From: Cyanophora paradoxa CCMP329
Taxonomy: Eukaryota; Plantae; Glaucophyta
Reading direction: 5' to 3'
Assembly: GCA_004431415.1 (NCBI GenBank)
Contig: QPMI01000023.1
Span: 62,001-126,000, forward strand
Length of the DNA stretch: 64,000 bases
A program made the position numbers and the translations under genes. The notes beneath the pieces are model-generated. The model was not told where the DNA came from and did not search any database. It saw only the letters and a program-made list of their open reading frames with translations. Below, piece after piece: positions 5,543 through 8,500 of this stretch (position 1 is its first letter; every line of letters begins with the position of its first letter).

Positions 5543-8500
5543 ATGGCGAAGGCGAAGCAAGCACCGAAGGCGAAGCAGGCCGCGACCGCGAAGCCGGCCA
5601 AAGTACAGAAGCAGCAGAGGTGCGTCTGATTCGCTAGCTCGATCGCTCGAAGCGCTAGATGCGCGATCGCGTGGGGATCGCGAGCCGCGCTGAGGCGAGC
5701 CCCGGCTGCTTGCGCAGCAAGGGCGGGAAGAAGAAAGCTGCGCTGCTGGAGGAGCTCTCCAGCGATGAGGGCTCGGGCGACGAGCAGATGGGCGACGAGT
5801 TCGATGACGAGGCGCTCGCGCAGGCAGGCGGCAGCGGCAGCGGTGCGGGGCCCTCCCGATCGCCCGCGAACGTGCACACAGGCACCGATCGCCGATCCTG
5901 CGCTCCGCAGACGGCAGCGATGGCGCTGGCGAGAACGACGAGTTCGAGGAAGTCGACGAGGACATCAGGTTCCGCAAGACGCCAGCGTACGTTCGCCCCG
6001 CGCGGCGATGCGGCACGAATCCGGTCGTGCGCACCGCTCACGCCGCGCCCGCCTCAGGCCCAAGGGGAAGAAGGGCCAGCTGATCGGGTCGGACGACGAG
6101 GAGGACGCGGACGAGGACGAGGAGACGCCCAAGGTCATCGCGAAGGCGGTCGCCAAGTCCAACTCGAAGCGATTCTCCGACGAGAACGCCAAGTGGCTCA
6201 AGCTGAAGGTGCGGGCGCGGCCCGGCGGCCGCGCGCTCTGCCCGCGCGCCCGCGGCTGACGCGCGCGGCTCGCAGGGCCGGAAGAGCGCGGGCAGCAACG
6301 AGGAGGAAGATGACGACGAGGAGGAGGACGGCGAGGACGGGATGGAGGACGACGAGTTCGGCGGGAGCGCGGGCGAGGAGGGGAGCGACGAGGACGACGA
6401 GGACGACGAGGAGGCCGACGACGACCTGCTCCCGATCGAGCGCAAGGCCCGCAAGCTCGACGCGCAGCGCAAGCGGTGCGCGCCGCCCGCCCCTGCCTGC
6501 CCCGCCCTCTGCGCCGCAGCTGACGGGCGGGCGGGCGGGCAGGGAGGCGGAGGTAACACAGGCGGAGCTGCAGGCGGCGCAGGCGACTGGCGACCGCGGG
6601 TTCCACCTGCCCACCGCCGAAGAACTCGAGGCCGAGAGTGCGCGCGGTCCCGCGGTCCCGCGCCGCGCCCGCTGTACGTACCCCTCCGACTCACGCGTAC
6701 CCCCCTTCACAGAGGAGTCCGGCGGCCTGGACATGCACTCGGTTCACGTCCGGATCCAGGAGGCGAGCGCCGCGCCTTACCCCGCGCTCCGCGCCGCGCC
6801 GCCGCTGATTCCTGTACCCCCCAGGTGACGCGGGTGCTGGCGAACTTTGGGCCGAACCACGAGGAGGGGCGCTCTCGGGGGGAGTATGTCGAATGCCTCC
6901 AGCAGGACCTCGCAACCTACTACGGGTACGGCGGCGGCCCCCCTCCCCGTCCGCGTCCGGGGTATGGGATTCGATCCGACGCGGGGCGCGCAGCTACGTT
7001 CCCTTCCTGATCGAAAAGTTCCTGCATCTCTTCCCCATCGGCGAGGTGAGCCGGGGTACAGCGTTAGTGCCGGGGATACCGCTTTGGGGGCTTTGGGGGC
7101 TTTTTTTCTTGCGCGGTCATCAGCCGTCAGCGCCCGGGCAGTTGGCCCATGGGTTGCTAGACACTCTATCTGACCGCATAAGAACGATGCACCAATAAAC
7201 CAGCGGCGCTTCTCTTATCGCGCCCCTGGCATCCATGCCTCGACATTTCCCCGCCGCCCGCCACTAGCGCCGTTCGCGGTCATCAGCCGTCAGCGCCCGG
7301 GCAGTTGGCCCATGGGTTGTTAGACACTCTATCTGACCGCATAAGAACGATGCACCAATAAACCAGCGGCGCTTCTCTTATCGCGCCCCTGGCATCCATG
7401 CCTCGACATTTCCCCGCCGCCCGCCACTAGCGCCGTTCGCGGTCATCAGCCGTCAGCGCCCGGGCAGTTGGCCCATGGGTTGTTAGACACTCTATCTGAC
7501 CGCATAAGAACGATGCACCAATAAACCAGCGGCGCTTCTCTTATCGCGCCCCTGGCATCCATGCCTCGACATTTCCCCGCCGCCCGCCACTAGCGCCGTT
7601 CGCGGTCATCAGCCGTCAGCGCCCGGGCAGTTGGCCCATGGGTTGCTCGACACTCTATCTGACCGCATAAGAACGATGCACCAATAAACCAGCGGCGCTT
7701 CTCTTATCGCGCCCCTGGCATCCATGCCTCGACATTTCCCCGCCGCCCGCCACTAGCGCCGTTCGCGGTCATCAGCCGTCAGCGCCCGGGCAGTTGGCCC
7801 ATGGGTTGTTAGACACTCTATCTGACCGCATAAGAACGATGCACCAATAAACCAGCGGCGCTTCTCTTATCGCGCCCCTGGCATCCATGCCTCGACATTC
7901 CCCTGCTCTCGTTTCCCGGCCAATCGTCCCTCGACTCGCCCAGAGCTTAGCTCTACCGACGTGGGCAGCCGAGAGATATTAGGCCTTGGATGGATTAGCG
8001 ACCACATTCTGCTATGCGTCGCTCTTGGCCGTAGAGCGCCGGAGAAGATAGCTGTGAGCTTACAACTTCGCTTTCCCTTCGTTTCTCTTTCGTGTTTCAA
8101 GGATCCGAGCGGTCATCAGCCGTCAGCGCCCGGGCAGTTGGCCCATGGGTTGTTAGACACTCTATCTGACCGCATAAGAACGATGCACCAATAAACCAGC
8201 GGCGCTTCTCTTATCGCGCCCCTGGCATCCATGCCTCTACATTCTATCCTATCCATTTTCAACGTTTTCGACCCGATTCCACGCCGTCCCAGCGCGAGTT
8301 TGACTCGCCCGCCCGCCCGCGCAGTGCGTTGAGTTCCTGGAGGCGATGGAGACGCCGCGGCCGATCACGATCCGCGCCAACACGCTCAAGGCCCGCCGCC
8401 GCGACGTCGCCCAGGCGAGAAACCCCTTCCTGCACCTCCCTCGCACCCCTCTCACGCTCGCCCTCGTCTGCAGGCGCTGACGCAGCGGGGCGTGAACCTG

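Follow-up and report, generated by a model that had tools for sequence, protein, structure and literature searches.

The window analysed here, a stretch of 64,000 nucleotides from the glaucophyte Cyanophora paradoxa CCMP329, carries on its forward strand an orthologue of NOP2, one intron of which holds six almost identical copies of a 136-nt unit. The host gene was identified from its exon pieces, searched singly. These pieces match the RsmB/F methyltransferase family (Pfam PF01189), and their best matches in the PDB are yeast Nop2, S. pombe nop2, a Chaetomium nop2-like protein, and human NOP2. The host thus combines the two marks of a NOP2/NSUN1 rRNA m5C methyltransferase, an RsmB/F domain and eukaryotic Nop2 proteins as closest relatives, and its naming as NOP2 in the original prediction stands. 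Within the N-terminal NOP2 exon, imperfect 12-, 15-, and 21-bp repeats rich in GAG and GAC (at 6298–6425) encode an acidic D/E tract. Further along the window, positions 12000–18000 have a G+C content of 47–53% within surroundings of 65–74% and contain few long open reading frames; this segment could represent an inserted element or a spacer poor in genes.

The intron that holds the repeats extends from 7046 to 8324 (1279 nt, GT..AG, donor GTGAGC, acceptor GCAG). Contigs from three RNA-like sequencing runs of three studies (X15, X17, and X19) join position 7045 to position 8325, and because these spliced contigs skip exactly that stretch, the intron is real. The same kind of evidence places an exon upstream (6993–7045) and another downstream (8325–8414). 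It also confirms a 68-nt GT..AG intron at about 6926–6993. Following the downstream exon, a 59-nt intron (8415–8473) appears to be of the GC..AG type; the spliced contigs of the three runs leave a 6-nt ambiguity in its placement, and GC..AG is the reading adopted because a canonical AG acceptor is obtained in a single register, with GC at its start. The intron at 7046–8324 had been called the only large intron of NOP2. This holds within positions 6800–8600, the range to which the check was limited, where the neighbouring introns measure 68 and 59 nt.

Tandem Repeats Finder reports a single array at 7112–7903 (period 163, 4.9 copies, 99% matches), which is the only high-scoring tandem repeat of the 64-kb window. 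A repeat search resolves this array and its surroundings into six 136-nt copies, all on the host strand and inside the intron. Five of them follow one another at a spacing of 163 bp and together span 7113–7900 (copy 1, 7113–7248; copy 2, 7276–7411; copy 3, 7439–7574; copy 4, 7602–7737; copy 5, 7765–7900), whereas the sixth is detached (8109–8244), with 80 nt between its end and the 3′ splice site. Both searches bear out the predicted arrangement of five 163-bp tandem units plus one separate copy. No further copy was found elsewhere in the window on either strand. The four spacers between the tandem units (7249–7275, 7412–7438, 7575–7601, and 7738–7764) are identical 27-mers with 81% G+C. Copies 5 and 6 are separated by a unique 208-nt stretch (7901–8108) in which no second snoRNA is evident, as its fold is no better than that of shuffled sequences (z +0.4) and it has no Rfam match. 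An intronic snoRNA gene cluster comprises at least two snoRNA genes in one spliceosomal intron on the host strand, and this intron contains six such units.

The copies are 98.5–100% identical in pairwise comparison, and a base-by-base comparison of all six finds only four variable positions in the unit (45, 47, 130, and 136). Position 45 is U or C, with C in copies 1 and 4; it faces G18, such that a G.U pair alternates with a G-C pair. Position 47 is A or C, with C in copy 4 only, and lies in a bulge. Both sites, which are in the upper stem of hairpin 1, therefore preserve a pair or fall where none is formed. Position 130, the last pair of hairpin 2, changes from G to U in copy 6, and position 136, the final base of the tail, is C in copies 5 and 6 and U in the others. 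Copy 3 is identical to copy 2, which is used here as the reference. The predicted location of the differences, in the upper stem of hairpin 1 and, for copy 6, at the base of hairpin 2, proved correct. Outside the unit, the 30-nt flanks on both sides of copy 6, on the 5′ side of copy 1, and on the 3′ side of copy 5 are only 20–37% identical to the tandem spacer. This is the level expected by chance, so similarity ends at the ends of the unit; the likeness of copy 6 is confined to the predicted extent of the RNA, as had been claimed. The near-identity of the copies suggests recent duplication or homogenisation of the units, and the sequences point to either recent tandem duplication or ongoing conversion, in line with the original view of a recently expanded or homogenised single species.

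Folded alone, the unit takes the form hairpin-AUAAGA-hairpin-ACA-NNN (copy 2: MFE −48.4 kcal/mol, z −2.6); when three units are folded together, cross-repeat pairing dominates. In hairpin 1, which occupies unit positions 1–65 (65 nt), the internal loop UCAGCC / ACUCUAUC lies between a lower stem of 7 bp and the upper stem. The sequence of the hinge at positions 66–71, AUAAGA, fits the H-box consensus ANANNA. In hairpin 2 (positions 73–130, 58 nt), the internal loop CCAAUAAA / CAUCCA separates the upper stem from a lower stem of 6 bp with one mismatch. The stem is followed directly by ACA at positions 131–133, and identity among the copies ends exactly 3 nt later. On the window, the elements of copy 2 lie at 7283–7288 / 7326–7333 (pocket 1), 7341–7346 (H box), 7355–7362 / 7393–7398 (pocket 2), and 7406–7408 (ACA). 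The top of a canonical pseudouridylation pocket lies about 14–16 nt upstream of the H or ACA box. Here, 15 nt separate the upper stem of hairpin 1 from the H box and 13 nt separate that of hairpin 2 from ACA, and the latter value puts the predicted target of hairpin 2 about 14 nt from ACA. Both hairpins thus show canonical pocket spacing. A small Cajal body RNA (scaRNA) was considered and rejected, as the terminal loops AGUUG and UUCUCUUAUC are without the CAB box UGAG.

The rarity of this architecture was gauged with a filter that requires two single hairpins closed beside ANANNA and ACA, each with a pocket 12–16 nt from its box. Helices of up to 2 bp are pruned by the filter; a 2-bp helix inside pocket 1 otherwise splits the loop. 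Across both strands of the 64-kb window, only copies 1–5 pass, and nothing passes in ten composition-matched null sequences; the filter was devised after the unit had been seen, and these counts measure rarity rather than blind detection. Together, fold and filter confirm the hairpin-ATAAGA-hairpin-ACAnnn layout proposed for the 136-nt unit. Copy 6 fails the strict filter. Its hairpins carry a single change, G130U, through which the terminal pair of hairpin 2 beside ACA is lost, and the failure is attributed to that change. Searching Rfam, which had been recommended as a check on the unit, produced no named relative: at gathering scores the whole 64-kb window gave no match, and within 6900–8500 there was none to an H/ACA family at E-values of up to 10. 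Sequence and predicted structure assign the RNA to the H/ACA class, but to no named family.

An H/ACA pocket leaves two rRNA bases unpaired, the target U and its 3′ neighbour. The rRNA on the 5′ side of these bases pairs with the 3′ strand of the pocket, and the rRNA on their 3′ side with the 5′ strand. Target motifs derived from this rule are GAGUUUGGCUGG for the large subunit (LSU) rRNA and a U after GGAUG for 18S rRNA. They were sought in surrogate rRNA, namely two complete eukaryotic rDNA units from metagenomes (L168 and L183), both Rfam-verified. Across the 18S, 5.8S, and LSU rRNAs of these units, each pocket has one best site, with 5+6 bp around an unpaired U-N. For pocket 1, in the 5′ hairpin, it is GGAGU[U]UGGCUGG in LSU rRNA (5+6 bp, two of them G.U). 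For pocket 2, in the 3′ hairpin, it is GGAUG[U]AUUUAUU in 18S rRNA at position 203–208 (5+6 Watson-Crick pairs). Matches of at least 11 bp arose by chance in 16 of 300 rRNA shuffles for pocket 1 and in 1 of 300 for pocket 2. Because a guide-derived pattern had served to retrieve the 18S loci, the presence of the 18S site in them is by construction. Consequently, the independent results are the match of pocket 1 and the existence of the predicted pocket 2 site in real 18S rRNAs. When a pocket-derived 15-mer was sought in viral contigs, only chance matches appeared, none of them in an 18S context.

The predicted LSU target aligns with U2244 of E. coli, in the middle of a UUU run and 7 nt 5′ of the P-loop nucleotide G2251, as read from the annotated rrlH gene; a blastn search with the eukaryotic P-loop region against E. 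coli genomes returned no match. In Arabidopsis, the methylated P-loop guanosine is G2610, which supplementary table 2 of PMC8351944 gives as equivalent to yeast Gm2619 and human Gm4166. Because the P-loop Gm is G2610 there, the predicted site corresponds to Arabidopsis U2603. The same supplementary table lists U2604 of 25S rRNA as a mapped pseudouridine with no assigned guide and no yeast or human equivalent (PMC8351944). The predicted site is thus one nucleotide away from a mapped pseudouridine, in the same U run. The main text of Sun et al. (2019) gives no sequence context for U2604. The predicted LSU target is absent from the yeast and human pseudouridine lists, and the predicted 18S target is absent from those of Arabidopsis, yeast, and human.

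A repeat inside a spliced intron, with H/ACA architecture in each unit and complementarity to real eukaryotic rRNA, is best explained as an intronic cluster in which six near-identical genes encode a single box H/ACA snoRNA, a guide for two rRNA pseudouridylations. We give this reading a probability of roughly 0.78. The expression, processing, protein binding, and actual modifications that we infer would run as follows. The array would be transcribed within the NOP2 pre-mRNA. After splicing, the 27-nt spacers would probably be cut, and exonucleases would trim the units to the bound H/ACA proteins (Cbf5/dyskerin, Nop10, Nhp2, and Gar1). With its 5′ pocket, each RNA would then direct pseudouridylation of the LSU uridine that corresponds to E. 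coli U2244, and with its 3′ pocket that of an 18S uridine near position 205. Local tandem duplication would have produced the copies, whose likeness would be maintained by gene conversion or be due to the recency of the duplication. A dosage effect would go beyond this scheme: of two proposals in the original prediction, the sixfold guide dosage is unproven, and the coupling of pseudouridylation to the NOP2 m5C enzyme is not supported.

A bolder version of the cluster reading is unlikely. According to it, the 5′ pocket is the first identified guide for a pseudouridine beside the ribosomal P-loop, and the array is perhaps evolving by conversion or RNA-mediated copying. If the predicted LSU site were the same as Arabidopsis U2604, the modification would be an ancient one of Archaeplastida, without a yeast and human counterpart. 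The second part of the proposal draws on the detached copy, in which homology limited to the mature RNA could mean conversion or RNA-mediated copying rather than plain DNA duplication.

It is improbable that the units are H/ACA-derived but largely dead weight, that is, a young amplification in an intron with one functional copy or none and with no meaning for dosage. Near-identity shows that the copies are young and can arise without selection, the closing pair beside ACA is gone in copy 6, and neither predicted site appears in the yeast and human lists. The mature RNA is also not seen in the RNA-like runs: contigs of X15, X17, and X19 contain spliced NOP2 mRNA only, with no units or other intron sequence. 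This absence says little, because the data are contigs and the libraries are presumed to be poly(A)-selected. However, boxes, pockets, and stems are intact in six of six copies, and both pockets match conserved rRNA. Moreover, the detached copy retains exactly 136 nt between unrelated flanks, a pattern difficult to account for if neither selection nor conversion acts on the RNA unit.

It is very improbable that the array is a structured minisatellite or a transposon-derived repeat that resembles H/ACA RNA by chance. The lack of an Rfam match would agree with such an origin. However, the full architecture occurs nowhere else in the 64 kb and in none of the ten null windows, and both pockets are complementary to rRNA. 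The units are also in sense orientation in the intron, and they have no terminal inverted repeats, A-tail, or target-site duplication.

The number of copies was assessed from short reads. In DNA run X1, word depth is 53–72 on contigs from the single-copy flanks, against 274 in the unit body, 189 at the spacer junction, 230 at the 5′ junction, and 260 in the 3′ part of the unit. The ratios point to about 5–6 copies, against 1–2, although word depth gives a coarse estimate and the assembly may have been built from the X1 sample. Of the words sampled from 6800–8600, X1 contains 0.87, versus exactly 0.67 in each of 13 other DNA runs (X2–X14) of the same organism from at least eleven studies (X2 names no study). 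Strains that differ in the array, or an effect of coverage, may account for the gap. Some X1 contigs match short G+C-rich exon stretches (at 6823, 6976, 8389, and 8571–8591) and then continue into unlike sequence; therefore, other places in the genome share these short stretches. An exact look-up of three open reading frames of the window, made to find other assemblies, gave no match. A true locus of one or two copies, enlarged by an error of assembly, is scarcely credible, since the short-read contigs that break at the array, none spanning it (which is expected of short-word assemblies), and the thirteen runs with the smaller share of words are set against a repeat depth that fits about 5–6 copies, a spacer junction that requires at least two tandem units and is itself about 3-fold the flank depth, and distinct variants (C45; C45 with C47) that require several copies.

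The six-gene cluster can be set beside three known systems. Vertebrate introns usually hold one snoRNA, which is freed by exonucleolytic trimming of the debranched lariat, and an intronic array needs extra cuts between its units. Like the vertebrate intronic H/ACA snoRNAs, the unit described here has two hairpins, a host involved in ribosome biogenesis, and, by inference, expression from the host intron. Unlike them, it forms an array instead of one gene per intron. A second comparison concerns copy 6. Mammalian snoRNA retroposons (snoRTs) are mature-length copies with an A-rich tail and a target-site duplication. Copy 6 resembles them in sharing exactly a unit of the size of the mature RNA and nothing of the flanks, but it has neither an A-rich tail nor a target-site duplication, and retroposition of this copy was rejected on these grounds. 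Its flanks share only the 6-nt word TTTCAA, 13–14 nt away on either side.

The third comparison is with the intronic snoRNA gene clusters of rice, Drosophila, and Chlamydomonas, many of which reportedly hold isoforms that arose by local tandem duplication. As in those clusters, several sense snoRNA genes separated by short spacers share one intron of a protein-coding host. The differences are that the organism is a glaucophyte and that the intron holds six almost identical copies of a single H/ACA species, not mixed species. Intronic clusters are described in rice and Drosophila melanogaster (Liang et al., 2002; Huang et al., 2005; both as cited in PMC2780460), and the title of Chen et al. (2008), as cited in PMC5122169 and PMC2875012, refers to extensive intronic clusters in Chlamydomonas reinhardtii. 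The rarity that the original prediction implied for a multi-copy intronic layout must therefore be given up. No description of glaucophyte snoRNAs was found in the literature searched. Since rice, fruit flies, and green algae have already provided examples of this layout, the find is ordinary as well as sound. It reveals no new mechanism, and what it adds to the glaucophytes is a well-formed H/ACA snoRNA with two testable predicted rRNA targets.
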